The notes under the pieces were generated by a model. It did no database searches, was not told the origin of the DNA, and saw nothing but the letters and a program-made list of their open reading frames with translations. The position numbers and the translations under genes are program-made. A stretch of 64,000 nucleotides of DNA from Thalia democratica. Its lineage: Eukaryota. The stretch is taken from positions 72,416,001 to 72,480,000 of the forward strand of contig OZ241827.1 of assembly GCA_965202585.1 (NCBI GenBank). The letters run 5' to 3'. Below are positions 29,921 to 64,000 of the stretch, one piece after another; the first letter of the stretch is position 1; each line of letters opens with the position of its first letter.

Positions 29921-32900
29921 ACAAGCTGATCGAGATGTAAACTAATCAACTGTAAAAAATTAAAACTGCTTAGTTTGTAATGGTTTTGTTGTATAAATAA
30001 AATAAATAAAAAGTTAATCTACAATATTGAACTATTAATTTAAGTTAAATAAACTAAAAACCAAAAAACATAATAAAATCACCATAATAAGTTAAGTTTA
30101 TAAACGTAAACTCTGAAAATTTAATACTCTTTCAACAAAGCATCAGAAACGCATAGCGCAAGGCAATAAAAACTTTGTAATGACTGATAAGCGATTGACT
30201 GCGCAAAGTAGTGGTTTGAAAACGAGAGAGCGAAGCTTCTTCCATTTCTCTCGTTTTCACCTGTGCTGCCCACACCCAACGTATGTAGCTTGTAACAAGA
30301 TACAGTTTCATGGTTATCTCGTTGCAGTGCTGTTCAAATCTGGTTTTATGCCGAAACTTCTGCCCTTTGATTAACCGAAGCTGCATAGCTTTCGAATTTA
30401 AATACTTTTAAATCGTTTTAACTCAAACTAACCTTAAGTCTTGTGGATTTTTTGAAGTGGTCGTTTAAAAAGGTTTCGGCTTAAATGTTCAGAAATTTTG
30501 AAAAAAAGTGGGTATTGAATGGCTCTGGATAAAATGATCAAAAGAATAAATAAGAAAAAATAGTGGTTTTGTTAACTCCATACGAGAAAACGCATTATGC
30601 GTTTGTCATTTGTCTGAGCTTTTTTATCTTTTCTGTCTTGTCTGGATTATGAAAGTTTAATGCAGGTAGTCAAGACAGGAGGCAAATACGAGCCGAAACG
30701 TTTCTCTTCAAATTTCGCCTGTAATATTTGTTTACTGTCTGGAAAAAAAAGTTCAAGTTGAAAATGCACGGCAAACAAATTTGTTTGCTTTAAATTTGTT
30801 GTTTTCTTCAAACTAGTAAAAAATTAAATTTTTAGTAAAATTTGAATAACTATACATGGTTGAAGAGTACTTACTAACTTTTTTTTATTCTTTATAAGCA
30901 TTCAAATCAACCTATAAAGCTTTATTTCATCATTTTTTAGTTAACCCTTTCATGAAATATTTACTAGTTTAACATTACAATTTTTTTATGAATTAATAAA
31001 GTAAGCTATGAAACGATTAAATGTTTTAATTGGTCTTTATGAACTACTTTAAATAATTTTAATAATTTTTATTCAGTCTGGTCAATATTTATTGAACTCA
31101 AAAACCATTTTACAGTATTTATCTTATGTTGTAATCAAAAACGTTTAGATAACTTTGTTTATACATAGATTAATTTACTTTATTGTTCTGTTTGATCAAT
31201 GTGAAAGTTAATGTAAAGTATAAAGTATTTTGAACCTTGTTTTATATTTTATTGTACTTGTTTGAGCTAAACATAATCTAACTAAGTTTGAAACTGATAA
31301 CTAAAACATTCACAAAAAAACATAAAAAAATAGAACTTTTTTAATTACGTTTATCTCTTTCAAGGGTTCTTGTTGCAAATTTTAACACATAAAAACTTCC
31401 AAGTTTTTGTATATCAATTAACTCAAAAAGTAGTTAAAACTTACTTTATTTAGTTTAATAAACTGTAATGAACTCAAGTTGAAATAAATACAATAAGTTC
31501 TAATAAATGTACAAAATTATTTAATCTAGAAAAAATAGTTATGTGTTTTAATGTATTTCACTGCTTTCATTAAGCATCTTTTTAAAACCAATGTTTTAAA
31601 CAACAAAAACAACAAAGAGTCAGAAACAAATATTTGAAAAACTTCAAACAAAAGAAGTTTGACATTTAATGCTGACAAATAGAATTTTAAGGTTATTTTA
31701 ATCTGTTTATACATGAAGAGCACAACAACACAACAGAGAAATATTAGGTGTACACAAATAATTATTTGATAATTTTTTTTTTGGTTGTAAAACGATTTTA
31801 TCGCAATTTTTTGTTTGTTTTTTAAACATTGTTAGTACTCTTTGTCAGTATTAATATGATTAAATTTAACTTGGCTGTCTTTAAAACTGTTTCCTCTTGG
31901 TTTCATTTGATTTTAAAGTCTTTTTTGTCAAATTGGAATTAATAAAATTTATAAACAAAAGTTACAAACGTTTGTAAGACAATGTGAGAAAATAAAACTT
32001 AATTCTACGTGATTAGTTGTTTAAGCTAGAACATCAAACGTTAAGTTTCGAAAAGTATTACCTTGGTAAATCTTTGATAAAAATAAAATACATAAACAAT
32101 ACTGCTGGAAATTTTTAGCATGTTATTAACATTAAGTAAAAACTATTTTTGCCAAGCTAGTTTTTTTTTTCCAAACTAAAACAATAACTACTTTTCACAT
32201 AATTTAAAACAGATTTATGAAAATAAAACATTTAACTATTTGAATATAATATATTAGCCATTATTTAAACCTAAAACTACAAATAATAATATGCTGTTTA
32301 AAGTAGTTAATTAATATTTTAAGCCAAGCAAATTCAAATTTAAAATAAAAAAATTAATCTTGATAGATGTGTTCAACTGTAGCATTCTATAATATATGAA
32401 TTTAATTCAATTTTGAAGTGTTTAATTTTCTTTTGACTGATATTTGTACCGTCAAACTCTCATGGGAATAAAAATTGTTTTTGCTAAAAATAAATAATAC
32501 AAGAACTTTATAAGGATTCTAAAACTTGGAATTATACTTGATAGCTTTTTATCTATTCAGAATTTAATCAACTTAAACCTTATTAAAAAGATTCCTATTA
32601 CTTATTAAATAGTATTAAGATTAATTATTTTGCAGTACAAAACACCTTTTTTAAGTTTTATAACGAAAACAAATTCAACTACATTTAACTGTAATTAACT
32701 AGTAAAAACATCTCCACATAAACAAAAAATTATAACTGTTAAGAAAATTTTAATTTTAATATAATTCTAAAGAACTTATTCTTTAAGTGAAAAGCCAACA
32801 CTACCACTGAAATAAAATAAATTAAGCTAAAAATGTTTATATTTAAAACTTTAGCAGAGTTTTATAAAAAATTAAAAGCTTTTATGTTTTTTAGTTAAAA

Positions 32901-34064
32901 TCTATGATTAAAAACTGTTTTTTTTTGTACCGCAAAGTTTTAGTTGAAACTGAAACCGTTGTTGAACTAAAAGTAAATTTAACGAAACCTAAATAGTTAA
33001 GTAGTTAGATTGTTAAATTATACAAAGACTTGCTTTTTGTTTTAGCAAACATCAGTTTAACACTTTTGTGGTTTGTAAAAATTTAAATGTTTTTTTTTGT
33101 TTAATTGTTTAAATAAGTAACTATACTAAAATTTTTAGTCACAATCATAATAACAGCTAATATAAAACTTAATAAAACTATAAAAAATAAAAATTTAATT
33201 AAAAAATATTTTAGTCAAAAAGCGTTTGACATTTAAAGTTTTTAACAACTTTTATTTGAAAAACTATAGTTTTAAGTTATTTACGTTTGTACATAAAGTT
33301 CTTCAATTTAAATCTTTAAGTACTGTTATTGTTCAGTAATGTAATTCTTTTTGAATAACAGTTTTGTAAATAATCAAGCTTTTAATGCACCTAAAGATTG
33401 CACCTAAAGATTTATAATGCACTTTTATACGATATATATCTAAAAAATCTGAATGTTTATTTTATAACAGTTAATGTAGGTTAGTTTTTACTTAATAGTT
33501 ACTATAATTTATACTTATTAGTTATTATAGGTTATTTTTTCCTTCATTTAAAAGAAAAACAACGAAAACTAAGATTTATATAAAATTACAAGAGTATTAT
33601 ATTTTATTAAAAAAACGTGTATGTATTAAGTTTAACATTAGTTGGAAAATTACATTAATATATAAATATCAAATTGGTAACAATTGTTGCAATACAGTTT
33701 GTAAACCGTGAACATTTGATAAAAAAAACCTTGTATCACTTAAACAAAAATATTCGTTAAAATAAGAGTGCTTCTAAGTTTTAAATATTAACTTTCCCTT
33801 GATAAAACTTAGTTATAAGTCAAAATAGTATTTTAAAACTATTTTTCTTTAAGCTTTAACATATTCAAAATTGTGTAATGTGATATAAGTTTTAACATAA
33901 AAACTTTAACATTTTTAAGAACAAAAAGTATAAAATAGATGATAAAAATGTTAAAAGACATTCTTAGTGTACAGTTTTAGTCAGTGGCTTAAAATTCGAA
34001 TCGCTTACAAGATGTAAATATCATTTGTCGTAAGTCGTTAAAATACTACAATTGTTTAAAACGT

Positions 34065-34226
34065 ATCCAAGTTATGGCAGGGTTTGCAATTAAATGAATG
34101 GTCATGAATTGCAATGTTTTTGCCAATTCATCTATGGTCTGCAACTGTTCGAAAAGATTGATATGACTCTTCTCTTATACAGGAAAGGCCCTGATCGACC
34201 GAGCAAGTAAATAAACATTTGTTTAA
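34065..34226 (+). promoter_or_regulatory. Conserved non-coding block upstream of A-type genes (copies at 47898-48060 and 59142-59304) with forkhead-like GTAAATAAACA
   Basis: Retained in diverged unit 3 where the upstream flank is not alignable; no shared ORF. Confidence 0.5.
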
Positions 34227-35077
34227 AATTGTCAAAACATTCATTGTCAAAATAGTCGGACACGTGTTACAAAATTATAATAAAAATATGCCGGTTTAAT
34301 TACTGTTATTGAGTGACAACAAATTATCAAAGTTGAATTTTGTATACTTTTAAAATTTTTTACATCATTTGACTTTGTTTAAATGATTATTAATTAATTA
34401 GCTTTAAGTAATTTATTATTTATAGTCTGCAAAACTGTAATTAGGGAAAACAATTAAATAGTAAGTTTCTAAGTTTAATAACTTTTGTTTTAAAGTGAGA
34501 AAAATGAACATAAATTTAAGTAAAATCATTGGTGTATCATATTAACATACTAGTTTCTGTTGGTTTATTGTATATACTAGTATGTTAGTCCGCAAATTAA
34601 GATTTTAAAAGTTCAACTTCAAAAAGTTTTATACATTCTTGTTGTTGAAGTTTTATTACAAGTATTTTGTTTTATGTTCTAAATGTAATTTATCCCAATT
34701 TAAGAAACAACAGTATACTGTTAGGTTGTCTGGAATATATATTAAACGTAACTTTCTAGACTAACTAACCTGTAATACTGCATAGTCGTTTTAATTACTG
34801 TGTGCTACTTTATTCAAGCAATTTACTTTCAGTTAATCATTTTATAGTAACTTTTAAGCAATGGTGTAATGCGTTTTTACTTTATGATAGAAGTTATAGG
34901 GCTAATGTAGCTTTTTTAACGAAACAAATGTTTTATCTATATTCCTTGAGTAGAACTGTTTTTTTATAAATACTAATATCTCATACCAGTGTCAATTATT
35001 CTAATGCATAAAGAACCAATTTTTAAAACAATTGAATGATCTACTTTGCTCTGCTTCGCTTGAACATAGAGCATTAA

Positions 35078-35227
35078 ATGTCTAATTCAAAACAAAACTT
35101 CACATTATACCTTGATTACAATCTAGACTTTGCTTTAGACGTTGATTTTAATAATAAGCTTAATAAAAAACTACAAAATAATTTACTGGAATTCGGCTTT
35201 CTACTACTTGCTTGTAGACTTTTTAAC
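35078..35227 (+). CDS. Candidate leader (signal-peptide) exon of receptor A1
   Basis: MSNSKQ...KLNKKLQNNLLEFGFLLLACRLFN followed by GTGAAG (phase 0), matching the phase-0 acceptor at 36653. The hydrophobic part is conserved in the B leader with synonymous changes. Confidence 0.5.
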
Positions 35228-36652
35228 GTGAAGAAAATATTTTTAGTCAAAAGTATTTAAAAAGTTTAACAGTTTCGGTTCTTTTTAAATTATAGTTGAT
35301 ATTTTTATCACAAATTGTTGGTACTATGTCATTAAATATTTATTTTAGTGAAATTTAAGTATACACATAGTCTAAGTATATCTAACTATAAACGTAAAAA
35401 CAAGCAACAGCTTTAAAATAAATTAATTTTTAAAAATTTTAGTAGTTTATAGAATTTTATTTTTGTTCTAGTTTAGATTCACTTTACTTAATATAACCAA
35501 TTTATCATAGAGCTTAAGTACGTTCAACAGTACTAAGTATCTCACATAGTTATTAAAATGTTTTAGAAGTGTGTCATGTTTTAACTGAAACTATTTTAGT
35601 AAAATTGAAGTACAACATAAAAACTTTTCTTTACACAATATTAGTTGCAAACTGTAAAAAAATTTTAATTAAAGATTACCAAAGCTGTTTGTACAACTAC
35701 GCAACAACTTTAAAATTTTTACTAAAAATATTTTTATATTTAACAGTTTAACTAAATAAGGTAGTAAATACCAAATAAATTCTAACTACACAAAAGAAAA
35801 CTTTGTTACTCATTTAACAACTTAGCTACGTATCACAGTTTCATTAAATTTTATGTCACGATTTTTTACCAATGTACAAAAACAAGGTATGATGCTTTAA
35901 ATAAGGCTTTTTTGTACTAAAGATATTTTTAATTTAGTTGAATTTATTTGTTTGGTGATTAATTCTAATTAGTTGTTTTTTTTTTTGTTATTTTACTTTC
36001 TTAAAACAGTTGTTAAACAACCAGTTGATCTTTATAGTATTTTTATACAGTTTGCTTTAGTTTTGTATTTTGCTGCTTAAACTTTTTGTTGATGTTTTAA
36101 AAAAAGAGTTGTTTGGTTTGATTATTAGAGTATTTAAGTGACACAATTAAACAAGAATTTCAAAATTAAAATCAAGTTTATAATTTTTATTTTGGTATTT
36201 TAATTCTTACCAGAAAGTAAAGTATAAAAACTAATATACAAAGAGTTTCTTAAGTTCACATAAAAGATTTTTTTGTGATGACTATAAACAGTTTAAACTT
36301 ATATATTGTAACTTCAAATGTAGCTTTAGTTTTTCTAAAAACAATCTTTCAAAGTGATTTGTACACTATCTTCAAAAATTAAAAAATAAACCTAAAAATT
36401 TGATACTTTATGACTTATTTATGTTATGTTTTTTTTTGGAATATAAAGAAAATAATATATTTATTAGTCTTTTAAAATTCTAATTTAAAATAATTATTTA
36501 ATTTTCACAGCTTTTATCATTAAAACAGCTTTACATAAATACTTTTAGTTTATAACCAAAAGTATAAAAAAGGTTGTAAAATAAACTTAGCCAAAGTGTT
36601 ATAGTTCTTCTGTTTTCTCTAAGTATAAGAAATTTAATCAACTTGTTATCAG

Positions 36653-37885
36653 ACACTAAATATCAAAATGGATTGCAAATATATTACAACTGGTGAGATA
36701 AAGCGATTGAGGTGCGATGATTTCCTGTTTGTTTACGAGTATTTCACTTTCGAAGAATCCGTTGAATTCTGCAGAAATCAAAATTACCAGTTTGCCAAAA
36801 TCAACGTCAAGGATGGTAAAATGGATGATAAGGAGTTGAAGAAGTTTGTAAATGTAATTAGGGGCTCCTACCGAGTAGGATTGAAATTAATAAACAAAAA
36901 TGGAACTTGGTCTAGAAACTGGTTTGATGGCGAAAAGTATGATGAAATATCCAGTGGTGAAATAAAAGTTTTAAATGAGTATCACGAAAATGATAGTTGT
37001 TACGACGTATTTGTAAACATATACGAAAGTCGTATCTACAAAGTGAAGTGTGTTGACAAAACTATGTTTTTATGCAGAAAGCCAGAAAATAGTTTAACAA
37101 CAAAATCGTCCAAAAGATTTTCCTATTCACAAATTACTAAAAATCCACGTATTAATCTTGGTCAGGAAACAACTTCTCCATATTTGTATGAAACCTTGAA
37201 AAATGTTTCTTTTAGTGACACTACCAAATCCAAAGTTGGTTTTACTAAGACATCCACAGACATAACAACTTCAAAACCAGCTAGGTTTAAGACACCTATA
37301 AGCACAACAAACTCATTTTATTCATCAAAACGTATGATCAATAATCCCTTTGTTACAACTACAAAATCCGGAGTAGTTTCTTTTACAAATAAAGCTATTT
37401 CAAAACCAGGTAGTTTTTTAAACAATAGTGAGTTCATAAAAAATAAATTTTTATTGATCGGAATGGGTTCTTCGTTGTGTTTTCTTTTTATTATTTCCCT
37501 TTTTTTACTTGCTTACATCTACCACAACAAAAGAAACATAAGAAACAAGAAAAATAAGAGAAATAAAAATATTGGAATGTCAGAGGTCAGGTTCTCACCA
37601 GTCGCAGTTGAGGAGCACCAGTTTTATGACGTCACAGCGAATAACGACATAAAGAATGACATCACACCAGTTGTAAGTGTGAAGCGAGACATTGCAGCAT
37701 CGCTTCCAATATCGTGTGATATTTGTCATGACGACGTCACAATTCCTTCTTGTTCAGTTCATAATGACGTCATAATACCATGTAATGCATGTCGTAATAA
37801 AGTGAGCAAGTTGAAAATAGAAAATGACAAAGATTCAGTTAATCTTTCTCAAGACTTTAGTTTTTGGGTTCACGTTGAAGAATAA
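36653..37885 (+). CDS. C-type-lectin-like domain + Ser/Thr stalk + TM + cytoplasmic tail receptor (copy A1), main exon
   Basis: 405-aa ORF from 36668, open to a TCAG acceptor 15 nt upstream. CTLD hallmarks FTFEESVEFC, YRVGL, WFDG, C..C..FLCRKP; TM LLIGMGSSLCFLFIISLFLLAYIY followed by a basic KRNIRNKKNKR stop-transfer. Confidence 0.85.
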   Translation, partial: TLNIKMDCKYITTGEIKRLRCDDFLFVYEYFTFEESVEFCRNQNYQFAKINVKDGKMDDKELKKFVNVIRGSYRVGLKLINKNGTWSRNWFDGEKYDEISSGEIKVLNEYHENDSCYDVFVNIYESRIYKVKCVDKTMFLCRKPENSLTTKSSKRFSYSQITKNPRINLGQETTSPYLYETLKNVSFSDTTKSKVGFTKTSTDITTSKPARFKTPISTTNSFYSSKRMINNPFVTTTKSGVVSFTNKAISKPGSFLNNSEFIKNKFLLIGMGSSLCFLFIISLFLLAYIYHNKRNIRNKKNKRNKNIGMSEVRFSPVAVEEHQFYDVTANNDIKNDITPVVSVKRDIAASLPISCDICHDDVTIPSCSVHNDVIIPCNACRNKVSKLKIENDKDSVNLSQDFSFWVHVEE

Positions 37886-38594
37886 AGAGTATTTTCTTGC
37901 TAACAAGTATTGACTGAAAATTAAATACACATATATATATATTATTGAAACTAAACTATTGTACATTGATGTTCATTAAAAATATTTTACCTGTTTTACA
38001 AATAATTGCACTAAAGTTGTTAAGTATGTTTATACTCTACTTAAACTGACATTTTTCATATCATACGCTAGTATAAGTTATAAACTTTAGTGCATTTTAA
38101 ACATTTGTTGTTGTTGCATTAAAAAAAATTTCTAAATAGTTCATTACAGTAAGTTAAGCATTTTAAATACATAATATAGTGTTTATAAATACTTTGATGC
38201 GTCAGTTTTTTTTAAGCAAACAACTATTATTCAATAAAAGTTTCATACTTATCAAAAACTATACACAAGTGAGTCATAATACTCACTTGTGATAATTTTA
38301 AATTTTTGCTGTTTTGTTTAGTTTTGTATAAACGGGATGAATAAAAAAATTATAGCCTACTAATAAGAAGTTTGTAACATTTAAGTAAATTCTATATTAT
38401 ATATATATATATACATTTATATATACTATTGGAAAAGTACGATTTATAAAATACTGGTACATATGTTTCATAAAGCTTTAATCATCAGCCACTTAAATTC
38501 ATTATTTTAAAATCGCACGTTTCCAATAAATTATTCTAAAGTCCTTCAAGTGGGCTCTGTAGAAGGTGTTCAAGTTTGAACAATAATCTTATTT

Positions 38595-38629
<35 letters not shown>

Positions 38630-38630
38630 A
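38595..38630. repeat. (TA)n microsatellite (paralogous copy 52414-52445; shorter one near 38393-38425)
   Basis: Direct reading. Confidence 0.9.
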
Positions 38631-39171
38631 AACAGTATTGTTTAAGACGTCTATGAAATTTTAACTTGTATATGACATACACTGCTGAGCATAAATAGAT
38701 TTGTAGTTAAAGCACAATCACTCATTAATTGCTTCTTGTCACTTAGTTAACTGAAAAAGGTCGTCATGGACCACCAATAGTAAGAAGAATCTGAACCTAA
38801 CCAACTCAATAGAATCATTGGGATGACTGAGGCAAAATTTAAGTGATGGACTGAATTATCACTCGAAAATTCGACTTGCAGCAGTCATCTATAATAATTA
38901 AACTAAGTACCCCAGACTTTTAAGTTTTGGGATGTTTAAAACACCGTGTTTAAGTTAAAATCTGGGGTGTTTAAAATGTTAAAGTATTCAAACTTGCTAA
39001 CGGACGCCACAGCAGAAAAAGGAGGAAACGAAAGATCATCGACAATTTTGTCTGTATGCTTCAAGTTTCTTAAATTAATGACACAGTTCAACGGAGTTTT
39101 CATAAAATGAACATAACTTGCAAAGATAGATATTTTGTTTTAAAAATTTATATAATGTATAGTTTATTAAT

Positions 39172-39232
39172 ATGCTACAAAACAATTTAATAGAATTGGG
39201 ATTTTTGCTACTTTCTTGTAGAGTTTTTTGTC
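39172..39232 (+). pseudogene. Leader exon of receptor B1 (signal-peptide-like)
   Basis: MLQNNLIELGFLLLSCRVFC + C|GTAAAA (phase 1), matching the CTAAC...TTTTTTTAG acceptor at 40613. Confidence 0.55.
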
Positions 39233-40613
39233 GTAAAAAGATAATGGCAAACCTATATGTAATTTTTTTTCAAAAACTTCTTTGTTTAAACAAATTTAGA
39301 TTAATCTTTCAAAATTTTATCTGGCATTTGGATCATGAGTTACTTCGATTTCTCAGTTAGTGAAACCAATGTATAGTGTATACAAGTTAAAAATGTTTAA
39401 ACGAGTACTTAAATTAAAATTCTAAAGTTTTAAAGTACTAATTGGTTGATAGGTGTTTTAAAATACTGTTTTAGATCTACGTTAATTTTGTTATATATAA
39501 GACTTTTTTTTATTATTAACGTCATATAGCTTAAGTACATTTTAAAAAAACTGACGTATATAGAGTTTACAATTTATTTTAATACCTGAAAACAGTGTTA
39601 AGTTTTTTACCAATACGAATAAAAAGTATAAAAGTATAACATAAGAGTAGTAAGTAGTTTTTTTTATACAAAAAATTAAGTATAAACTGCAAATACATTT
39701 CAAAACAATTAACTTTTAAATAGTTAAAAAGTGGTATAAAAAGTAGATGAGCATTAAAAAAAGACTTTCAAACTTTCAATGATTAAAAATAAAACATACT
39801 TTTTTAGAGTTTTTATTAAAGTATAATTTTTTTTTGGTAAAATGTCCTTACGCATAAAAAAAATATTTAGGTATTACATCATGTATTGTACATCAAGTCA
39901 AGAATAATTTATAGAACCTTTAAAATCTCAATGTGGAATTATTTAAAAAAAAGCTTGTTTTTACGTTTTATAAAACTGTTTTTTTTTTTTTTTGTGTAAA
40001 TTTGAAGTTTCAATTTAGTTAGGATTTTCGACCAATACTTTTTAATAGAAAACTTTTATTAGAATAAATCGCTGGTAAACAAGGTTTATTGTTGAAAATA
40101 TCGTTTGAGATTTGAATTTAATTTATAGTTTATAATTTTTAATAAAAGTTGAATTTTTGGTAATGATAGGTATCTGGTTTTGAATTGGTTCCCTGTGGAG
40201 GGAATAATCTAGTTTAAATATTGAAAATTTTTAACTTTAGTTTTAGTTTTAGTTTTTTTAAAACTTAATTTGAAATGTTATTTTTTATATAAAGCAAAAA
40301 ATATTTTTTATAGTCAAGTTTGAAAACAAAAGACGACTTATGGGTTCTTTTTATAAGTGTTGAGTTAAACATAATATATAAAAAAAACTATTTCAAAAAT
40401 ATTTATTCTTTGTCTTTATTTTATTTTCAACATATATCCAAAGTATTAGTGCATAACTAGTACTTTTAAATTTAATAAAAAGTTTAGTTATTGTTTTTGT
40501 TCTGTAAGATTAAAACAAGCTGAAAAATTTATAATTTTCTTGTTTTTATTTTACAAAAATTGTACAATTTTTGAAACTTTGACTTAATACCCTAACTGTT
40601 TTATTTTTTTTAG

Positions 40614-48900: not shown

Positions 48901-49050
48901 ATGTCTAATTCAAAACAAAACTTCGAATTATACCTTGATTACAATCTAGACTTTGCTTTAGACGTTGATTTCAATAATAAGCTTAATAAAAAACTACAAA
49001 ATAATTTACTGGAATTCGGCTTTCTACTACTTGCTTGTAGACTTTTTAAC
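48901..49050 (+). CDS. Candidate leader exon of receptor A2
   Basis: Near-identical to 35078-35227 with the same AAC|GTGAAG donor. Confidence 0.5.
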
Positions 49051-52410: not shown

Positions 52411-52448
<38 letters not shown>

Positions 52449-52986
52449 AGTATTGTTTAAGACGTCTATGAAATTTTAACTTGTATATGACATACACTGC
52501 TGAGCATAAATAGATTCGTAGTTGAAGCACAATCACTCATTAATTGCTTCTTGTCACTTAGTTAACTGAAAAAGGTCGTCATGGACCACCAATAGTAAGA
52601 AGAATCTGAACCTAACCAACTCAATAGAATCATTGGGATGACTGAGGCAAAATTTAAGTGATGGACTGAATTATCACTCGAAAATTCGACTTGCAGCAGT
52701 CATCTATAATAATTAAACTAAGTACCCCAGACTTTTAAGTTTTGGGATGTTTAAAACACCGTGTTTAAGTTAAAATCTGGGGTGTTTAAAATGTTAAAGT
52801 ATTCAAACTTGCTAACGGACGCCACAGCAGAAAAAGGAGGAAACGAAAGATCATCGACAATTTTGTCTGTATGCTTCAAGTTTCTTAAATTAATGACACA
52901 GTTCAACGGAGTTTTCATGAAATGAACATAACTTGCAAAGATAGATATTTTGTTTTAAAAATTTATATAATGTATAGTTTATTAAT

Positions 52987-53047
52987 ATGCTACAAAACAA
53001 TTTAATAGAATTGGGATTTTTGCTACTTTCTTGTAGAGTTTTTTGTC
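52987..53047 (+). pseudogene. Leader exon of receptor B2
   Basis: Same sequence as 39172-39232. Confidence 0.55.
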
Positions 53048-54423
53048 GTAAAAAGATAATGGCAAACCTATATGTAATTTTTTTTTCAAAAACTTCTTTG
53101 TTTAAACAAATTTAGATTAATCTTTCAAAATTTTATCTGGCATTTGGATCATGAGTTACTTCGATTTCTCAGTTAGTGAAACCAATGTATAGTGTATACA
53201 AGTTAAAAATGTTTAAACGAGTACTTAAATTAAAATTCTAAAGTTTTAAAGTACTAATTGGTTGATAGGTGTTTTAAAATACTGTTTTAGATCTACGTTA
53301 ATTTTGTTATATATAAGACTTTTTTTTATTATTAACGTCATATAGCTTAAGTACATTTTAAAAAAACTCACGTATATAGAGTTTACAATTTATTTTAATA
53401 CCTGAAAACAGTGTTAAGTTTTTTACCAATACGAATAAAAAGTATAAAAGTATAACATAAGAGTAGTAAGTAGTTTTTTTTATACAAAAAATTAAGTATA
53501 AACTGCAAATACATTTCAAAACAATTAACTTTTAAATAGTTAAAAAGTGGTATAAAAAGTAGATTAGCATTAAAAAAAGACTTTCAAACTTTCAATGATT
53601 AAAAATTTAACATACTTTTTTAGAGTTTTTATTAAAGTATAATTTTTTTTTGGTAAAATGTCCTTACGCATAAAAAAATATTTAGGTATTACATCATGTA
53701 TTGTACATCAAGTCAAGAATAATTTATAGAACCTTTAAAATCTCAATGTGGATTTATTTAAAAAAAAGCTTGTTTTTACGTTTTATAAAACTGTTTTTTT
53801 TTTTTTTTGTGTAAATTTGAAGTTTCAATTTAGTTAGGATTTTCGACCAATACTTTTTAATAGAAAACTTTTATTAGAATAAATCGCTGGTAAACAAGGT
53901 TTATTGTTGAAAATATCGTTTGAGATTTGAATTTAATTTATAGTTTATAATTTTTAATAAAAATTGAATTTTTGATAAAGCTAAGTATCTAGTTTTGAAT
54001 TAGTTCCCTGTGCAGGGAAAAATCTAGTTTAAATATTAAAAATGTTTAACTTAAGCTTTAGTTTAAAAAAAAATTATTTGAAATTTAGTTTTTTAATTAC
54101 AGCAAAAAATATTTTTTATAGTCAAGTTTGAAAACAATGACGACATATGAGTTTTTTTTTTGGTTTTAAGTGTTGAGTTATACATAATATACTAAAAAAA
54201 ACTATTTCAAAAGTATTTATTCTTTTTTTTTCATTTTCAACACACATCCTTAGTATTAAAGCATAACTATTACTTTTAAATTTCATAAAACGTTTAACTA
54301 TTGTTTTTGTTCTGTAAGATTAAAACAAGCTGAAAATTTTACACTTTTCTTGTTTTTGTTTTACAATAATTGTACAATTTTTGAAACTTTGACTTAATAC
54401 CCTAACTGTTTTATTTATTTTAG

Positions 54424-55874
54424 CATTAGTTTCGCAATTAGGTAAACAAAATAATATTGAATGTGCGTGGTCGTTAAAACCTGAGTGATCAATTTTCATC
54501 AGTCAATAATTATTTGAGATGAGTAGTAAACTCATTGACTTCGATGTTTACAAATGCGGTGGGCTTCTAATTGTTTTTAAACCGTTGAGCTTCGAACAAT
54601 CAGTCGGAAACTGCAGAAATCGAAACTATCAGCTGGCTAAGATAAACGCCAAGCAAGGCGAGGTTGACGATGACAAGTATGAGAAGTAAAAAAAACGGAA
54701 TAAAAGGTCTTTTCCGTGTAGGTTTGAAACTTGTGAACGAAAGTGGTCTGGAATGTGGATTGATGGTGGAATGTACGACGAAATGTCTAGTGGTGAAATA
54801 AAATTGTTCCATAAGTACCATGAAAACAGTAGTTGCTACGAGGAAATTGTAAACATGCAACACAAAAATCGAATTTTGAAAGTACAGTGTGGTGACACAG
54901 GTGTTTTTCTATGTAGAAAGCCAAAAAATAATTTGACAACAAAATCATCGCAAGGATTTCTTATTTAACAATTACTAAAAAGCAACAAGATAATATTTGT
55001 ATAAAAGCTTGAGTCTGAGTCTGATTTAGTCCCTATTGAGACATTTATAAATGCAACAACTTCAAAATCAGCAAGTATTAAGGCACCTATAAACACAAAA
55101 AAATTATCATACTTACCTAAAAATAGAAACAGACGTACATTTGTTACAACTACCAAATCGGGATTAGTTTCTTCTAAGGCATCATCAAATTCAACTATTT
55201 CAAAGCTAGGTAGCTTTTTATACACTGAATCATATATGTGTGAATCTATTAACAAAACTTTATTGATTGGAATAAGCCTTGCTTTGTGCACATTTTTTTC
55301 CCTTTTTTTAATTGCTTACATCTACTACATCAAAAGAAACAAACAAAACAAGAAAAACAAAAGAAATAAAAATATTGGAATGTCAGAGATCAGGTTCTCA
55401 CCAGTCGCAGTTGAGGAGCACCAGTTTCATGACGTCACACAAACATCTAACAACGTCACAAAGAATCACGTCACAGCAGCTGTAAGCATGAAATGTACAG
55501 ACATTGCAGCATCGCTGCCAATTTCGTGTGATGTTTTTCATGATGACGTCACAATTACACGTAATGTTTGTCATGATGACGTCACACCGAAAAAATTCGC
55601 GTCGACAACAGATGATGTCACAACAGATGCATGTTTAAAACGTGCAAAATTAGATAATAATGTAGCATCGCTTCCATTTTCGTGTGGTATTTGTCATGAT
55701 GACGTCATAACTCCGTCTTATTCTAGTCGTAATGACGTCAAGTCATCAGATTTGAATAAAGATTCAGTTGATCATTTTGATGGTCACAATGAAGTGAGTG
55801 AGATGAGTACTGAAAATAACATAGATAATCCCGATGAAGATTATAGCTTTTGGATTCACGTTTCTGAGTACTGA
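54424..55874 (+). pseudogene. CTLD-TM receptor pseudogene (copy B2)
   Basis: Stops at 54486 and 54687, 6-bp deletion near 54745, 1-bp deletion near 54950, shared frameshift near 55010; TM/tail ORF 55236-55874 is intact. Confidence 0.85.
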
Positions 55875-58800
55875 TTACTCTTGTGCCTACCATAATAAGA
55901 CTAAAACTTTCTAATAACATAAAAATACTTTTTTCTTTGAAAAAAAGAACTAAGTCTTATGTTTGTTAACGACATTTGATACTTTTTTTTTTCATTTTAC
56001 AATCATTTGCATTAAAATGTTTCAATTTATTTAAAGACTTTACTGTATTTCAAATATTTAACCTTTTAAAAGCTAATGAAAATCATAAGGTTAAACGTAT
56101 ACTGCCGTAAATTTGATTAAACGTACCTTTTAAGTTAAATTAACGTTTATATAAGATTACGATGTAATAATACATTATTTATAATTATAAAAAGTATGAA
56201 ATTGTTTCTAAACAATAGTTTTTTTTTTTTCAGAAAGAGTTATATATCAAAACTTTAAGCACACTATATACACTTTATTGTACTAATTAAGATGTATTAA
56301 TACTAATTTATGGTAAAGAACACTTTATCTATTTGTTTCTAAGCATATCAATATAAATCGTTTAGTATTTTTCACTTGTTTATTGTGTTATAAGATTAAA
56401 AGTATCAGTTCCGATACAGTTTTTGCATATACTTTATAGTTTTTAAAGCAAATAACGGATACAGATAATTTTAATGAAAAACAATGTAAAATTTTTTTTT
56501 TATGTTTATAACTTTTTTTTTGAGTTTTTAGTGAATACTTTATTTGTTTGCTTGCTTTAGACTTTGTTGCTTTGTTCATACTAATAAAAAATAGACTTTT
56601 ATTAAAACTTCGAATAACTATTTCTGATAGAAAAATACTTACTATCGTTTTTTTTTATGTGTTAACCATTAGAGCTCTGTTTGTTTTTTATCTATTTTTT
56701 CATTAATTTTTTATAGTTTAACACTATTTCTTTTCTATTAATTAATAAAAAATAACTGAACCGATTTAATGTATTAAATTAAAATTGATTGTTGTTTTAA
56801 TTGGTCTTTGTGAACTACTTTAATTACTTTCGGTAATCTGTATTCAGTCTAGTCAATATGTATTATATTCATAATATAATATGTACTTAAATACTTTATT
56901 GTTTTGTTTTAACAATGTGAACTAAAAACTAAAGTAAAGTATAGATCTTTTGAACCTTATTTTATATTTTATTGTTCTTTTTTGAGCTAAGTATAATCTA
57001 AATGAGTTTAAAACTGAAATCTGAAAACTTTACAAAACATTTTTTTCCTTTTTAAATGTCTATGTCTTTTAGAAGTTCTCGTTGCTTTAACTACCTCATA
57101 AAAACTTCCAAGTGTTTGTATATAAAATAATTCAAAAAGTACTTAAAGTTTACCTTGGTTAAATAAATTGCTATAAACTCAAATCAAATAAAAAAAACGC
57201 ATGTTAGAAATTTAGAAATTGTTTAAACTAAATTGAAAACCTATGTTATCAGTTTTCTAGGACTTAACTAAAATCATAAACCATCTTTTAAAACCATTAT
57301 TTCACACAAAAATAACAAAAAGTAGTCAGAAACAAATGTTTAAAACTTCAAACAAAAAAAGTTTGACCTTTAATACTGACAAATCGAATTTTAAGGTTAT
57401 TTTAATCTGTTTATACATGAAAAGCACAACAACACAACAGAGAAACATTAGGTGTACAAAAATAGTTATTTAATAATTTTTTTCGTAGTTCGTAAAACGA
57501 TTGTATCGCAATTTTGTGTTTGATTTTTAAACACTGTTAGTGCAAACACTTTTTGTTAGTAATGATTTGATTAAATTTTACTTATAAGTCTTTAATACTG
57601 TTTACTGTTTGTTTCATTCGATTTTTTAATAAATTGTCAAGTTTGAGTTAATAAAATTATGAATAAAAGTTACAAACGCTAGTAAAACACAATAAACTAA
57701 TAATTTAAAGATATTATTTTTTGTATGAATTTTTATTTATAAAGTTATTCAGTTTGGATCTTAAATCATTTTAATAGTAGTGTATTGCTGATAATCCAAT
57801 TTTTTACATCGAAAAACTTTGAGCTTTCAATAAACTCCAAATGCTTGTTTTTACAATGTTATTGCTTAATTATGTATTAAAATAAACTTAGAAAAAATTT
57901 CAAAAAAATTCATATATTTCAGTGATAAATTTATAGAAAGTAAGCATTCGATAAAAAAAAATATTTACAGTTTAAACAGAAGTTTTTTTTATGGAGGCTA
58001 CTTGTAGTTTTTGAATATTTACTTTGCCTGAACTCAAAATAACTATAGCATAAAACATTTGAATGAATCTTTGCTTTTAAATGGCTATATTTTTTTTCTA
58101 AAAGTTTAAACTTTTTAATAAGCAAAATAAGTTTATAAATACCTAGCTCTTTTGTTTACTTGTGTTGGCAGTAAAGAAAATTAATCATTTTTTATTATTT
58201 TTAGGTAACGTACAAAATACTTTATATATACTTTATGGTACTGTTCATACAATTAGGTTATTGTTTTACTTGCTTAAAGGATGTGCGTTGCTTTGATAAT
58301 AAATTATGTATTACTACTTAAGTTATCTACTAACTTAAACTACTGTCTGAAAAGAGCTTAAATAGCATTCTTCAACAGTAGTTTTCAGACTTTTTTGTCG
58401 TAAATACAAATAGTACTATATAAAAACCAAAAATACTTTCCAATATCTCAAAAATAAACTTTCAGAGTTTATTTTATACGTAGTTTATACCAGGGACAGC
58501 TATAGACTGGCTACCTAGTGCTACCCCAAAAAAAAAGTTTAAATTTGTTACTTAGTACGTTTTTAATTCAGGCATATAAAATACGTGTTGTTACTTCCTG
58601 CTTAATTTATAAAATTAAGTGCTAAGCAGCACAGCATAAAATCCACAACTTGGAAACAGCTGTAAATAGCATATAAAAATATCCTTTTTTTTATAGTTCA
58701 ATAATAAGTTTATGACTAGTGTAAGTTTATTTAAAATCTAGAAACTTTTTATTGTTCATCCAACGTAGAAACTTTACTTAGAGAAAACATATAATTTAAT

Positions 58801-60113
58801 GACAAAAAATACGCTTAAAATATTACTTCTGTAAGCTTAAATTCCAAGTTTCTGAAGGAAAACCTCGCAGTTTAAAATATTAATTTCAAGAAAATTGATA
58901 ATAACAAAAATATTATAGAAAAGAAAATAATTATTAGAATACATAAAAACTATATTTAATCGACTCTATCATTACCTTAAAAATATGTGTATATTAATTA
59001 CAAATATTTGAAAGTGATGCTTTTTCAATTAAAGTAATCTGAGTATTTAGTTTTACTAGCTGGTTTTAAACTAGAGTGGACTCTAGAATTAAACTACCAT
59101 TGGGCGTGAGTCATTTTACTAAATGATGTTAAGTTTATTTTATCCAAGTTATGGCAGGGTTTGCGATTCGATGAATGGTCATTAACTGCAACGTTTTAGC
59201 CAATTCATCTATGGTCTGCAACTGTTCGAAAAGATTAATATAATGTCTCTCTAATACATAAGAGGCCCTGATCTACCGAGCAAGTAAATAAACATTTGTT
59301 TAAAGTGTTTCTATACAGTTTATGTCAAAGTAGTTGCAAGTTTATGCCGGTTTAGTTTACTGTATGTGAATGACAAAAAGTTAACAAGGTTGAATTGTGT
59401 ATTCTTTTTAATATTAGTTAGATAGATCACTTGATTTGGTGTAAACAATAATGAATTTATGAGCTTAAAGTAGTTTGTTAGGTTTAGTTTGCATTACTAT
59501 AACTTTGAAGAATAATTTTAGAAGTAAATTTGTGAGTTCAATAACTTCTTTTTACAACGACATAAATGAAATTATTTCATGTAAAATCATTAATATATCA
59601 CAATATATTACTGGTTTCTGTTGGTTTATTGTATATACTAGTACGCTCGTCCGCAAATTGTTCAACAAATTTTAAAAGTTCAACTTCAAAAAGTTTAATA
59701 TATTCTTGTTGTTGAAGTTTTATTACAAGTATTTCGTTTTTTGTTTTAAAGCTAATATATCCCTAATTAAAACAAAACAGTATGCTGTTAGGTTGTCTTG
59801 AATATATTTTAAACATTACTTTCTAGACCTATTAATTTGTAATAATGTGTAGTCGTTTTAATTACTGTTTGCTTCTTTAATCAATCGATTTACTGTCAGC
59901 TAACCTTTTTATATAATTTTGTTTTACTACGGTTTTATTTTATGGTAGAAGTTATTAAGTCCTATGTGGCTTTTTTTACACAGAAAAATGTTTTGTCGAC
60001 ATAACCTGTTTTTTTTTATAAACAATAATTTGGCCCGCCAATAAATAGTATTCTGATTAATAAAGAACCAAGTTTAAAACAATTGTCTGGTTTGTTTAAC
60101 ATTAAAAAACGAT

Positions 60114-60239
60114 ATGCGAGACCTTGTATAAAATCTTAACTTTGATTTGGACGTTAATTTCAATAGAAAGCTTGTTAGGGAAACGCAAAGTAATTTACTT
60201 GGACTGAGCTTTCTATCCCTTGCTTTTAAAGTTTTTGAT
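60114..60239 (+). pseudogene. Decayed leader-exon homolog upstream of copy C
   Basis: Gapless codon alignment to the A leader (NLNFDLDVNFNRKL..QSNLLGLSFLSLAFKVFD), but TAA at 60129 and the donor GT replaced by CA. Confidence 0.45.
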
Positions 60240-61514
60240 CAAAAAAAAACAATTTAATTAAATTAACCGTAAAAACTATTTAATAATTTTTTTTTGCAAA
60301 TATTATTTTTGTGTTTGTGTCATAAATTGACTTCAAATATTCACTTAAATTGAATCTAAGTATACAAACAATCAACGTAGAAACAAGCAACATTTTCAAA
60401 ATATATAATTTTTTAAGCAATTATCAGTTTATAGATACTAAAAAAGTTACTTAATTTTTTCTAAAACCTAAGAAGTTTGTCAAGTTTTTAGTAAACTGAT
60501 TAAAGCAGAATTAAAGTATAACATAAAAGTCGAATGAAAAGTTTATCTTTTAATACTATTTGCAAACTGATTACAATTTTAAAATTACAGATTATCAAAA
60601 TTGCTTAAAAATATAAGCAACAAATCTAAAAACAGTTACTAGAAATACTTTTAAATGCCTTATGTTTTATATCTCTAATTAAAGTTTTAATTGACAAAAA
60701 AAAATTATTTGCGCCAGCAAAATGATGTTACACATTAAACGATTTACCTAGTGTCAGAATTTCTTTTAACCTAATGGCACGAGTTATTAATCAATTGTAA
60801 AAAACAAGACTTGATACTTTAATAATTGTTTTTTTTATGATAGTTTTTGTCATTTTACTTAAACACTAACTCTTATTTTTTTGTACCATTCTAAAATAAC
60901 TTTTAAGATGAGTAAAATATTTTGTAGCTCTTTTTTAAATTTGAGCATAATTTATTTAAGTTTTAACTCTAGTATTCAAAGTTTTTGTTTATATACAAAA
61001 TAAATTTGTCAAAATTGACCATTAGAATATTTATAAGTTAACAAGAAGTTTAATTTATAAAATTCATAATTTTTTTTTACATTCTTACAAGAAAATAAGC
61101 ATACAAGCTTATATACAAAGCCTTGTTTGAGTTTAGATAAGAGACGTTTATGAGACTATTATAAATATTTTGATATTGTTACTACTAACATAATTTATTT
61201 ATTCTTTAAAAAAATATTCATTATTACTTATTAAATATTTTCAATACGTAAAAAAATTATCTTAAAAGTTTAATACTGTATAACATATTTATTTTCTTAT
61301 TATTTTATAATGAAAACTACAACTACATAATTTTAAATTTTTAACAACTTTAAATAAAAAATATTTTTACAATTTCTAACAACAAAACAGCTTTTAAAAT
61401 GTACTTTCAATTTGTATGCGAAAGTAAAAGGTGAAAAAAAATACAAAAAATTGTTGTAATTATTTAATTTTTCTCCTGGATATAACTAGTTAAGGTTGAT
61501 CAAATTGTCGTCAG

Positions 61515-62798
61515 ATACAAAATATTGATATGATCTGTAAATATTTTAAAACTGAGGTGATAAAGCGTCTGAGGTGCGACAACTTTCTGTTTGTTAACGA
61601 GTATTTCACTTTCGAAGAATCCGTTGAATTCTGCAGAAATCAAAATTATCAGCTCGCCAAGATCAATGTCAAGGATGGTAAAGTGGATGACAATGAGTTG
61701 AACAAATTCATAAATATATACCAAATGGGTTTGAGGGGCTCTTACCGAGTAGGATTGAAATTTGTGAATAAAAATGGAGCTTGGTCAGGAAAGTGGTTTG
61801 ATGGCGAAAAGTATGATGAAATTTCCAGTGGTGAAATAGAAGTTTTAAATGAGTACCACGAAAATGATAGTTGTTACGATGTTTTTGTAAACATATACGA
61901 AAGTCGTATCTACAAAGTGAAGTGTGTTGACAAAACTATGTTTTTATGCAGAAAGCCAGGAAATAGTTTAACAACAAAATCGTCCAAAAGATTTTCCTAT
62001 TTACCAATTACTAAAAACCCACAAGATACAATCTCGCCATATTTGCATAAAAGCTTGAAAAGTGATTATTTTGGTGACACTACTAAATCGGAAGTTGGTT
62101 TTATTAAGACATTCACAGACATAACAATTTCAAAACCAGCTAATACTAAGGTACATATAAGCACAAAAAGTTCATCTGAACGTGTGAACAACCATACTTT
62201 TGGTACAACTACCAACTCCAAAGTAGTTCCTTCTAACACATCTACAAATACAAAGATTTCAAAACCAGTGAGTTTTTTAAACAATGGTGAATCTATAAAC
62301 AATAACACTTTATTAGTCGGAAAGGGTTCTGCATTGTGCTTACTTTTTACTTTTTCTATTTTTTTACTTGCTTACATCTACCACAACAAAAGAAACATAC
62401 GAAACAATAAAAACAAAACAAAGCAAAATATTGAAATGTCGGAAATCCGGTTTTCACCAGTCGCAGTTGACGAGCACCAGTTTTATGACGTCACAAAGAA
62501 TGACGTCACATCATCTGTAGGTGAGGTACGTACAGGCATCGCAGCATCGCTTCCAATTTCGTGCGATGTTTTACATGATGACGTCACGCTGAAAAACGTC
62601 ATATCGACAGCAAATGACGTCACCACTGCACCTGAATCTGGCCGTAATGACGTCTTATTAACAAATAATGCCGATTGTAATAAATCAAGCAAGTTTGAAA
62701 CAGAAAATGATAAAGATCCAGTTGATCCCGATGCACAAAACGATAAAGTTAATGTTTCTCAAGACTTTAGTTTCTGGGTTCACGTCGATGAATGTTGA
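61515..62798 (+). CDS. CTLD-TM receptor (copy C), main exon
   Basis: 422-aa ORF from 61530, open to a TCAG acceptor 15 nt upstream; same architecture, ends QDFSFWVHVDEC*. Confidence 0.8.
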   Translation: MQNIDMICKYFKTEVIKRLRCDNFLFVNEYFTFEESVEFCRNQNYQLAKINVKDGKVDDNELNKFINIYQMGLRGSYRVGLKFVNKNGAWSGKWFDGEKYDEISSGEIEVLNEYHENDSCYDVFVNIYESRIYKVKCVDKTMFLCRKPGNSLTTKSSKRFSYLPITKNPQDTISPYLHKSLKSDYFGDTTKSEVGFIKTFTDITISKPANTKVHISTKSSSERVNNHTFGTTTNSKVVPSNTSTNTKISKPVSFLNNGESINNNTLLVGKGSALCLLFTFSIFLLAYIYHNKRNIRNNKNKTKQNIEMSEIRFSPVAVDEHQFYDVTKNDVTSSVGEVRTGIAASLPISCDVLHDDVTLKNVISTANDVTTAPESGRNDVLLTNNADCNKSSKFETENDKDPVDPDAQNDKVNVSQDFSFWVHVDEC

Positions 62799-63541
62799 AC
62801 ACTTTTTGCAACCAAGTATTAACTTAAAACTTAAAAATTATTAATTGTAAAATATTGTACACAGATGATTTAAAAATTATATTTTTATACTCTTTATTCT
62901 TCCGTAGTTACAAGAAAATTAAATTCAAATGCTTCTTTACAAAGCGTTTCGTAACTTAATATAAAATATTTTAAATAATAATTTTAAATTAAACCAATAA
63001 CAAATTTAAACAGTTCTCTTTCGTCACACACTTCAACGGAGCTCTGTAAAATATATGTTAATTTAATAAAGAAAGAGTACTTTCTAAATTTGTTTAGATT
63101 ATTTAATCCAGTAAATTTGTTTCGCTAGGATCTTTATTAGCAATCGCTTAAATTTATATTTTGAATAGTTAACTTTATGTTGTATAAATTTTATATATTT
63201 AAAAATTTGTTTAAAACAAAGTTCTAATGTGATTTGTTTATTATTTTGATACTTTAAATTTTTGTTTTAAATTTAACACTTAAAATATGTTTGTAATCTG
63301 TTTATTTCGCAATAAAAAGTAAAGTTACTTGTTAATTAGTACTTTGATATTCTAATTAAAAAGACTATTTAATTTTTACAAATTCTACTATTAAAACAGC
63401 TCTAGATATGTTAAGCTTTATTTTAACCATTTTTATTTTAAAAGCAACAGTATAAAAAAAGTTGTAAAGTAAATTTAGCCAAATTGTTGTAACTATTTCA
63501 TTTACTAAAATGTATAAAAATATTATTCATTTTTTCATCAG

Positions 63542-64000
63542 ATACTAAATATACCGATTGATAGTAAGGCACCTACAAAGACAAAAAACGCATTGTATTC
63601 ATCTATAAGTATGAACAATCATACCTTTGTTACAACTACTGAATCCGACGTAGTTTCTTTTAAGACATCTACAAATACAACGATTTCAAAATCAGACTAT
63701 ATTTTTAACACTGATGTATATAAACGTGAATCTATAAACAACAACACTTTATTGATTGGAATAAGCTCTGCTTTGTGCCTAATTTCTTTTTTTTTTTTCT
63801 TATTCTACTTGCTTACATCTACTACATCAAAAGAAACAAACAAAGCAAGAGAAATAAGAGAAAGCAAAGTATTGAAATGTCGGGAATCCGGTTCTCAACG
63901 GTCGACGTTGAAGAGCACACATTTTATGACGTCACAAAAACATCTAACAACGTCTCGAAGAATGACGTCACAACAGCTGTGAGCGTGAAACGTACAGAGG
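63542..64000 (+). other. Lectin-domain-deleted paralog (copy D): stalk + TM + tail, runs off window; frameshift in a 12-T run
   Basis: Acceptor TCATCAG|ATACTAAAT homologous to A and C; open frame ILNIPIDSKAPT...NNNTLLIGISSALCLIS. One extra T in the run at 63787-63798 would restore LLAYIYYIKRNK...FYDVT. Confidence 0.7.

Follow-up and report, generated by a model that had tools for sequence, protein, structure and literature searches.

We analysed a 64,000-nucleotide stretch of the Thalia democratica genome (C2:72416001-72480000 of the 801-Mb assembly; hereafter the window, with positions counted from its first nucleotide), part of which is occupied by a tandem cluster of single-exon genes for lectin-like membrane proteins. 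The region from 30 to 64 kb is AT-rich (21-31% GC), and the window has no runs of N. Only six open reading frames (ORFs) of at least 120 amino acids were found in this region, all of them related and on the plus strand, and lowering the limit to 75 amino acids added only short frames that overlap the family genes. The chance of a 415-codon open frame, estimated from the base composition (about 27% GC), is about 1e-16 per start, and we therefore regard these ORFs as genes.

Self-comparison showed that about 2.5 tandem units of approximately 13.8 kb each fill the interval from 30.8 to 64 kb (Table 1). Positions 32467-41386 are 93.5% identical to 46363-55179 across 8.9 kb, and 42068-44639 are 89% identical to 55172-57689. 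Self-BLAST further matched 30780-32034 to 43437-44691, and aligned 34064-37925 with 59141-62835 at about 71% identity, which marks a third, more diverged unit beginning near 56547. A preliminary description of this DNA had proposed units of about 13 kb with at least six paralogs (A1, B1, A2, B2, C and D), each combining a C-type lectin-like domain (CTLD), a Ser/Thr stalk, a transmembrane (TM) segment and a tail in one exon. All six were located; the unit length is close to that proposed, and the single-exon architecture holds for the three intact genes (A1, A2 and C). The remaining copies are two pseudogenes (B1 and B2) and one head-less fragment (D), so that intact, pseudogenised (B2), transposon-disrupted (B1) and domain-deleted (D) copies do lie side by side, and exchange between copies is evident from the mosaic structure of C described below. 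B2 retains the TM segment and a tail with the ending EDYSFWIHVSEY.

Table 1. Features of the tandem cluster in the window
Feature	Position	Strand	Evidence
Tandem unit 1 (A1 + B1)	30780..44690	+	self-BLAST; direct-repeat families D1-D18
Tandem unit 2 (A2 + B2)	43437..57689	+	self-comparison, direct repeats
Unit 3, more diverged (C + start of D)	56547..64000	+	self-BLAST; cluster continues about 42 kb past the window
Conserved proximal upstream block of A1: 'gtataag' 36623-36629, 'ttatcag' ('cag' 36650-36652) 15 nt before ATG	36623..36667	+	paralogs and metagenome relatives
A1, intact, single exon, 405 aa; CTLD 1-145, Ser/Thr stalk, TM ~262-280, tail 125 aa	36668..37885	+	ORF, Pfam, alignment
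B1, pseudogene, pieces in frames 2, 3, 1 and 3, coding sequence interrupted by transposon	40742..42766	+	tblastn
Non-autonomous hAT-like transposon, 681 bp, inside B1	41387..42067		termini and target-site duplication read from sequence
A2, intact, 405 aa, 98.8% protein identity to A1 (5 aa different)	50489..51706	+	ORF
B2, pseudogene, one frame with three TAA stops, Cys3 replaced (MSSKL)	54519..55874	+	sequence
C, intact, 422 aa, mosaic of paralogs	61530..62798	+	ORF, Pfam
Very high-copy short repeat between C and D	63049..63172		contig depth
D, frameshifted fragment without lectin-like domain (stalk, TM, tail)	63527..64314, window end at 64000	+	tblastn, extension mapping

The insertion in B1, a miniature inverted-repeat transposable element (MITE), is the sole transposon noted in the units. 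It carries 15-bp terminal inverted repeats (TAGGGGTGGGCAACG and CGTTGCCCACCCCTA) around an interior of GGATCCGG-rich subrepeats, and is flanked by an 8-bp target-site duplication (TTCTAAGG) at 41379-41386 and 42068-42075. The corresponding site in B2 is empty, and the insertion is therefore younger than the duplication of the unit. A first look at the genome gave 2669 candidate members of the MITE family, and a C4 copy is 100% identical over 647 bp, which suggests recent or ongoing mobilisation. A transposon- or virus-borne origin of the gene family itself was considered and rejected because the units hold no further ORFs of at least 75 amino acids apart from the short overlapping ones.

We mapped a further 60 kb beyond the window. 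The whole cluster spans about 70 kb (window coordinates 36.7-105.8 kb) and comprises 15 copies on both strands, 6 of which are open (A1, A2, C, E, F and G) and 9 frameshifted, stopped or fragmentary. Some head-to-tail neighbours are separated by gaps of only about 500 bp (D to p7, a fragment to E, and E to F); these closely spaced stretches, 63527-66166 and 90450-94578 (C2:72479527-72482166 and C2:72506450-72510578), might be co-transcribed. The cluster is only one of several in the genome: a genome search returned at least 56 matches, on the chromosome-scale contigs C2, C4, C5, C6 and C7 plus two small contigs, with other clusters on C7 (31.30-31.42 and 34.5 Mb), C4 (100.49-100.56 Mb) and C2 (58.8, 64.9 and 75.6 Mb) and single copies on C5, C6 and the small contigs. 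The paralogs of the other clusters are likewise intronless and start M-x-C.

Alignments of 11 full-length and 15 N-terminal family sequences defined the lectin-like domain. Invariant residues are M1, C3, C16, L20, F21, F28, S31, C35, A43, R73, G75, L76, K77, W85, W89, G92, Y95, C132 and C140, and C115 is nearly invariant. The cysteine set C3, C16, C35, C115, C132 and C140 is that of a long-form CTLD, with four core cysteines and an extra N-terminal pair; judging from their positions, the core cysteines are predicted to pair C1-C4 and C2-C3. The strings R[VI]GLK and WxxxWxDG, which resemble the WIGL and WxWxDG motifs of the fold, are invariant as well. Lectin_C (PF00059) of Pfam scored 25.6 bits with C and 21.8 bits with A1 (gathering threshold 22.6). 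An AlphaFold2 model of the domain, built from a 15-sequence alignment, reached a predicted local distance difference test score (pLDDT) of 82, and a Foldseek search of the PDB and the Swiss-Prot models returned lectin-like domains only, with E values down to 2e-6. The domain thus has the C-type lectin-like double-loop alpha/beta fold. The top 19 structural matches were of group V, the natural killer (NK) type, and Mincle, langerin and collectin CL-K1 were less than 1 Z unit away from them, so that any lean towards an NK-type structure is weak. Neither EPN nor QPD occurs in any copy where it would be expected ahead of C115 (C reads L-N-E at residues 106-108), and the position of WND, sought by alignment to DC-SIGNR, reads [IV]-Y-[KR] or Y-K-V. 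The sequence and structure searches thus bear out what had been described, namely a CTLD that keeps the core cysteines and the GL and WxDG motifs and lacks EPN/QPD and WND. Because the Ca2+/sugar triad is missing, the ligand is probably a protein or another Ca-independent one. In gene F (positions 1495-2814 of locus L006, C2:72509259-72510578), the frame is open and the conserved Cys115 is replaced by Gly, which leaves Cys132 unpaired; this gene may be at an early stage of decay.

In a full-length model of C, residues 1-145 are folded, residues 259-299 form a helix, and residues 146-265 and 296-422 have a pLDDT below 50. The stalk is disordered, mucin-like and Ser/Thr-rich, and the tail is disordered and acidic. 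The net charge is +1 to +8 over the 15 residues after the TM segment and -1 to +3 before it. This basic C-terminal flank, together with the mucin-like stalk, predicts that the N terminus is outside and the C terminus inside. The tails measure 125-190 amino acids (120-170 had been estimated) and contain none of the tyrosine motifs sought in the motif scan, namely immunoreceptor tyrosine-based inhibition, switch and activation motifs (ITIM, ITSM and ITAM) and YxxPhi. In particular, the ITIM consensus [SIVL]xYxx[IVL] and the ITAM consensus YxxL/I(x6-12)YxxL/I are absent from A1, A2, C, E, F, G, the C6 copy and a homolog from Tara Oceans, as the preliminary description had judged for canonical ITIMs and ITAMs. 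The tails do share short motifs of their own: EMSEIRFSPV..FYDV near the membrane, repeats of SLPISCD..H(D/N)DV with two to five [ND]D[VI] strings, and [DE]x[FY]SFW[IV]xV[SE]E near the C terminus. The last of these, the W motif, is kept in B2, the C6 copy, the Tara homolog and the related proteins P0002, P0004, P0008 and P0019, at 30-40% overall identity. It might conceivably be read as LC3-interacting-region-like (W-x-x-V after acidic or Ser residues) or as an AP-2 or PDZ ligand. A haem or zinc-finger reading of the tails was rejected as unsupported; the Pfam matches (Cytochrome_C7, C1_4 and STE3) were sub-threshold noise caused by CxxCH-like strings, which are not conserved across copies.

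All copies start M-x-C, with the Met two residues ahead of the first cysteine of the domain. This Met is kept in 18 of the 19 genomic copies examined and in most metagenome proteins that begin with the domain, down to about 30% identity. An in-frame TAA lies at -12 in E, F and p7 and at -18 in L029, an in-frame stop lies near the ATG in G and p10 (directly adjacent in p10), and a TAA immediately precedes the ATG in L031 and in the metagenome contig L034; in the E/F, G/p10, L029 and L031 lineages and in L034, no AG occurs between the upstream in-frame stop and the ATG. Given these stops and the conserved Met, translation most probably starts at M-x-C, and the proteins would have no signal peptide; the cleavable N-terminal signal peptide of a classical type I receptor was not found. 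The element ttgtt(a/t)tcag is conserved 10-45 nt before the ATG in most lineages, including relatives with about 30% protein identity, and in A, E and F a gtataag lies 27-28 nt ahead of it. This block is a candidate 3' splice or trans-splice acceptor, or a candidate core promoter of the TATA-plus-initiator kind.

We calculated dN/dS ratios (omega) between pairs of family members for each part of the protein by the Nei-Gojobori method. The ratio was 0.17-0.31 in the lectin-like domain (0.67 for E versus F), 0.75-1.2 in the stalk, 0.25-0.53 in the TM and juxtamembrane region and 0.46-1.2 in the tail. The head is constrained, the stalk evolves freely, and the tail is constrained at its motifs only. 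The comparison of dN/dS by domain that had been suggested as a check therefore gave purifying rather than domain-wide diversifying selection on the head, and domain-wide positive selection on the lectin-like domain was rejected. Divergence also varies sharply along single pairs: dS between C and E is 1.43 in the head and 0.043 in the tail, and dS between C and G is 0.096 in the TM region. Sliding windows resolved C into an A-like head (up to 99% nucleotide identity), a G-like TM and juxtamembrane part (92-94%) and an E-like distal tail (98-100%). This three-donor mosaic offers direct evidence that paralogs lying 25-45 kb from one another have undergone gene conversion or recombination domain by domain. 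In a maximum-likelihood tree of the head sequences, the copies fell into the local clades {A1, A2, C, B2}, {E, F, p7}, {G, G', p10} and {C7 copies}, with metagenome sequences interleaved among them, for example P0013 with E/F and the A-like P0022; the gene lineages therefore predate the split from related marine species. With 15 copies of which 6 are open, dS values from 0.03 to more than 1, intact and dead copies of mixed age, exchange between copies, and this interleaving, the birth-and-death evolution proposed for a cluster of non-canonical lectin-like membrane proteins is well supported.

The tails of the paralogs in other clusters are of a different kind. Seven of the eight examined carry an ITIM consensus (VTYMEI, VIYMEV, VTYIEV, IAYIEI or STYAEI) within a positionally conserved string, N-[ND]-x-[TIAV]-Y-x-E-[IVL], and these sister tails also carry a repeated Y-x-x-[VI]-[DN]-K. 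Three sister paralogs have a string resembling a hemi-ITAM (hemITAM), DDVYTVV or DDVYASI. One C4 gene (minus strand, 1117-2691 of locus L046, G000:C4:100548000-100553000) encodes a 305-amino-acid tail with nine YxxM motifs, most of them in an [NT]YEFMEG repeat, which we take to be an SH2 motif of the PI3K type. Its tail terminates in DDVYASINKK, and the gene lies in the same C4 cluster as members with the ITIM consensus, so that one could envisage an activating/inhibitory pairing within that cluster. ITIM-consensus, hemITAM-like and YxxM motifs were found in none of the seven W-tail proteins included in the tail comparison. Judged by their motifs, the window genes form a tyrosine-motif-free 'W-tail' branch of a larger superfamily, and the sister tails outside the window would lend the immune idea indirect support. 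P0004 and P0008 have a head that groups with the tyrosine-tail branch and a C terminus of the W type, which implies either an exchange of tail types or an ancestral W motif.

Few relatives were found elsewhere. A word-indexed search of 5.8 billion proteins returned one, from a Tara Oceans scaffold, at 39% identity, and a family profile search of 1.84 billion representatives returned 57 proteins at E <= 1e-3; so small a number places the family far from mainstream lectin-like domains. The proteins whose origin was looked up belong to marine metagenome assemblies, of which four are part of Tara Oceans project PRJEB4352, and to ascidian genomes. This distribution alone would point to a pelagic tunicate as the likeliest source. 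We considered whether the relatives' seven short contigs, four of which belong to the Tara Oceans project, might be cDNAs; judging by their non-coding flanks, all of them are genomic and could therefore reveal no spliced leader. Neither C nor A1 was found as an exact protein in public assemblies, literature searches found no description of this family, and the protein and profile searches revealed no one-to-one orthology to a conserved receptor family, in keeping with the lineage-specific system suggested at the outset. The family thus appears to be undescribed and lineage-private, with relatives in tunicates and ocean metagenomes.

A search of sequencing runs identified three whose type is not recorded; their contigs extend over genes and intergenic sequence alike, and we therefore read them as DNA. 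No RNA run with the locus emerged from this search. With run contigs mapped at a 90% threshold on 58001-64000, the C locus was recovered from two samples of two studies at 98-100% identity, in short contigs, and some of the variants may reflect cross-mapping of paralogs. The short repeat between C and D reached a summed contig depth of about 33,000, compared with about 100-500 in its surroundings, and each of the three runs showed many loose ends there.

Outside the cluster, the window contains a nidogen-like multi-exon gene on the minus strand (7423-18050) whose exons encode G2F (E = 5.5e-10), EGF and thyroglobulin type-1 (E = 4.9e-13) domains; the exons around 6-8.3 kb have 43% GC, far above their surroundings. 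The segments 1495-2086 and 5994-6367 are GC-rich, carry overlapping ORFs in both orientations whose translations are of low complexity, and are probably simple-sequence or exon-flanking GC islands.

Taken together, we read the locus as a tandem cluster of about 70 kb of lineage-private, single-exon lectin-like membrane proteins whose likeliest role is cell-surface recognition tied to immunoreceptor-type signalling or trafficking, and we put the probability of this reading at about 0.6. The product would be a single-pass membrane glycoprotein with an outer long-form lectin-like head from residue 3, a stalk, a TM segment and a disordered inner tail acting through short linear motifs; and recognition at the cell surface would feed into, or modulate, immunoreceptor-type signalling or trafficking. 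The cluster itself evolves through tandem duplication, decay of copies into pseudogenes, transposon insertion and gene conversion of single domains. We infer the signalling connection because sister branches of this genome have ITIM-consensus, hemITAM-like and YxxM-repeat tails, and an immune or recognition role is plausible by analogy, in view of the clustered genes of fast turnover, a lectin-like domain that does not appear to bind sugar, and the ITIM-type tails of the sister branches. Several points weigh against it. The tails of the window genes have no recognised signalling motif, the purifying selection across the whole lectin-like domain is unlike that of a binding site engaged in an arms race, and F, which lacks Cys115, shows that an open frame is no guarantee of function. 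The run search yielded no RNA evidence, and the topology is a prediction from charge bias and mucin-like composition. Finally, an N-terminal domain of 260-290 amino acids (about 180-430 in the superfamily as a whole) would need to pass through the membrane without a signal peptide, which is unusual; pro-neuregulin provides a precedent. A bolder version of the same reading, which we consider doubtful, would make the family a large immunoreceptor-like superfamily of pelagic tunicates in which the signal-peptide-less head crosses the membrane by an unconventional, reverse signal-anchor route, different clusters provide inhibitory (ITIM), activating-like (hemITAM-like and YxxM-repeat) and W tails, domain-wise gene conversion shuffles heads and tails, and the whole is a convergent, oppositely oriented counterpart of the vertebrate NK gene complex, with the W-tail genes serving as decoy or trafficking partners through SFW[IV]xV.

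The rival that deserves most weight, though we still hold it to be unlikely, is that the proteins are not immune at all and are instead mucin-like adhesion, glycocalyx or endocytic membrane proteins, for example of a mucous feeding net, the tunic or the gamete surface, clustered simply because intronless genes duplicate easily. A near-neutral stalk (omega about 0.8-1.2) below a conserved head (about 0.2-0.3), window tails devoid of a tyrosine signalling motif, and protein-language-model neighbours that include the layilin-type architecture would all fit such proteins. The sister branches, however, carry ITIM, hemITAM-like and YxxM motifs typical of immunoreceptor signalling, and rapid turnover combined with domain-wise conversion is the pattern of recognition loci, although it is not exclusive to them. 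It is a good deal less probable that the genes encode ordinary type I receptors whose signal peptide lies on a short upstream leader exon spliced at the tcag acceptor before the ATG. In A1, A2 and C the 15-nt interval from cag to ATG keeps the frame and contains no stop, and the distant Ciona relatives P0036 and P0051 and the metagenome protein P0043 do have N-terminal signal peptides. Yet E, F and p7 have a spacing of 16 nt that includes the in-frame TAA, the ATG of G, p10, L031 and L034 is preceded immediately or at a short distance by a stop without an AG between the two, and the Met is conserved in the 18 of 19 copies and most of the full-length N-terminal metagenome proteins noted above. 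The RefSeq model from Clavelina also begins just before the lectin-like domain, and the gaps of about 500 bp between D and p7, the fragment and E, and E and F leave little room for another exon. A leader exon is thus formally possible for A1, A2 and C only.

Two further explanations concern the locus as a whole, and we give them still less credence. The cluster could be a decaying and largely non-functional relic whose open frames belong to young duplicates still free of stops, as the 9 broken copies among 15, the loss of Cys115 in F, the omega of 0.67 between the heads of E and F, and the missing RNA evidence might suggest. This is quite improbable, given an omega of 0.2-0.3 at dS of at least 1 between old lineages (A/C versus E, G, the C7 cluster and the Tara homolog), short motifs conserved down to 30% identity in tails that otherwise evolve freely, and orthologous lineages in other marine samples (P0013, which groups with E/F, and the A-like P0022). 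Least probable of all is that the duplication of A1/B1 into A2/B2 is an assembly artefact in which two divergent haplotypes were placed in tandem. Units that are 89-93.5% identical and differ by a young MITE could fit very divergent alleles; the window, however, is free of gaps, the duplicated units are followed in phase by junction sequence and by a third, diverged unit, and many more genuine paralogs lie in the wider cluster. Were the A/B duplication false, the main conclusions would be unaffected.

An ectodomain of 180-430 amino acids with disulfide bonds and no signal peptide, if confirmed, would be an unusually large substrate for the reverse signal-anchor route, and the superfamily provides a natural series of tails (ITIM, hemITAM-like, YxxM and tyrosine-free) on one kind of ectodomain. 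The locus offers a clean, intronless and rapidly shuffling receptor family that appears private to tunicates, with its nearest relatives in ocean metagenomes. If the genes are unexpressed or merely adhesive, the cluster would be only another lineage-specific expansion of lectin domains.

The only named relatives are two uncharacterised ascidian proteins, XP_026695952.1 (Ciona intestinalis LOC113475686) and XP_076813959.1 (Clavelina lepadiformis LOC143460337), which hhalign matched over the lectin-like domain with a probability of 97% (E = 4e-11 and 4.5e-10, respectively). They share [FY]R[IV]GL and W.DG..[YF] with the window family and have the same architecture of lectin-like domain, Thr-rich stalk, TM segment and Tyr-containing tail; however, identity is 24-27% and confined to the head, and the tails do not align. 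The Clavelina RefSeq models, like the window family, have no signal peptide, whereas the Ciona protein has one. With respect to vertebrate receptors, the group V set of the NK gene complex (NKR-P1, Ly49, NKG2D/CD94, LOX-1, Dectin-1 and CLEC9A) consists of type II proteins with an N-terminal tail and a C-terminal CTLD. The order in the window proteins is the opposite, with the CTLD at residues 3-145, the TM segment at about 260-300 and the tail C-terminal. Layilin, CD302, chondrolectin and CLEC14A/CD93 do share the order of N-terminal lectin-like domain, TM segment and cytoplasmic tail, and the layilin and CLEC14A clusters were among the nearest by protein-language-model features (scores 0.90 and 0.78, respectively). 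These receptors, however, have signal peptides, are conserved single-copy vertebrate genes and possess extra domains or other tails, and no specific sequence relationship to layilin-type receptors emerged from the protein and profile searches.

Among tunicates, BsCD94-1 of Botryllus and CiCD94-1 of Ciona are, as here, membrane receptors with a lectin-like domain. According to the review PMC5465252, both are CD94 orthologs and not expanded tandem families, the Botryllus receptor is type II, and CiCD94-1 has a domain that does not bind carbohydrate and is expressed in blood cells. Both are absent from the 57 profile matches. The Fester co-receptors (FcoR) of Botryllus schlosseri, which act in allorecognition, form a type I, multigene and clustered system of variable copy number, with the ITIMs VIYMTI and VAYAIV and the hemITAM EDDVYAIL (PMC12582321). 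Its ectodomains belong to the immunoglobulin superfamily, whereas those described here are lectin-like, and the window copies have no tyrosine motifs of the FcoR type. The sister-branch strings VIYMEV, VTYMEI, DDVYTVV and DDVYASI, on the other hand, resemble the FcoR tail motifs, a likeness of short motifs only, which we regard as a lead and not as proof of shared signalling. Recognition-receptor families of invertebrate chordates bear on how NK-type and allorecognition systems repeatedly arise from unrelated domains with a common logic of tail signalling.

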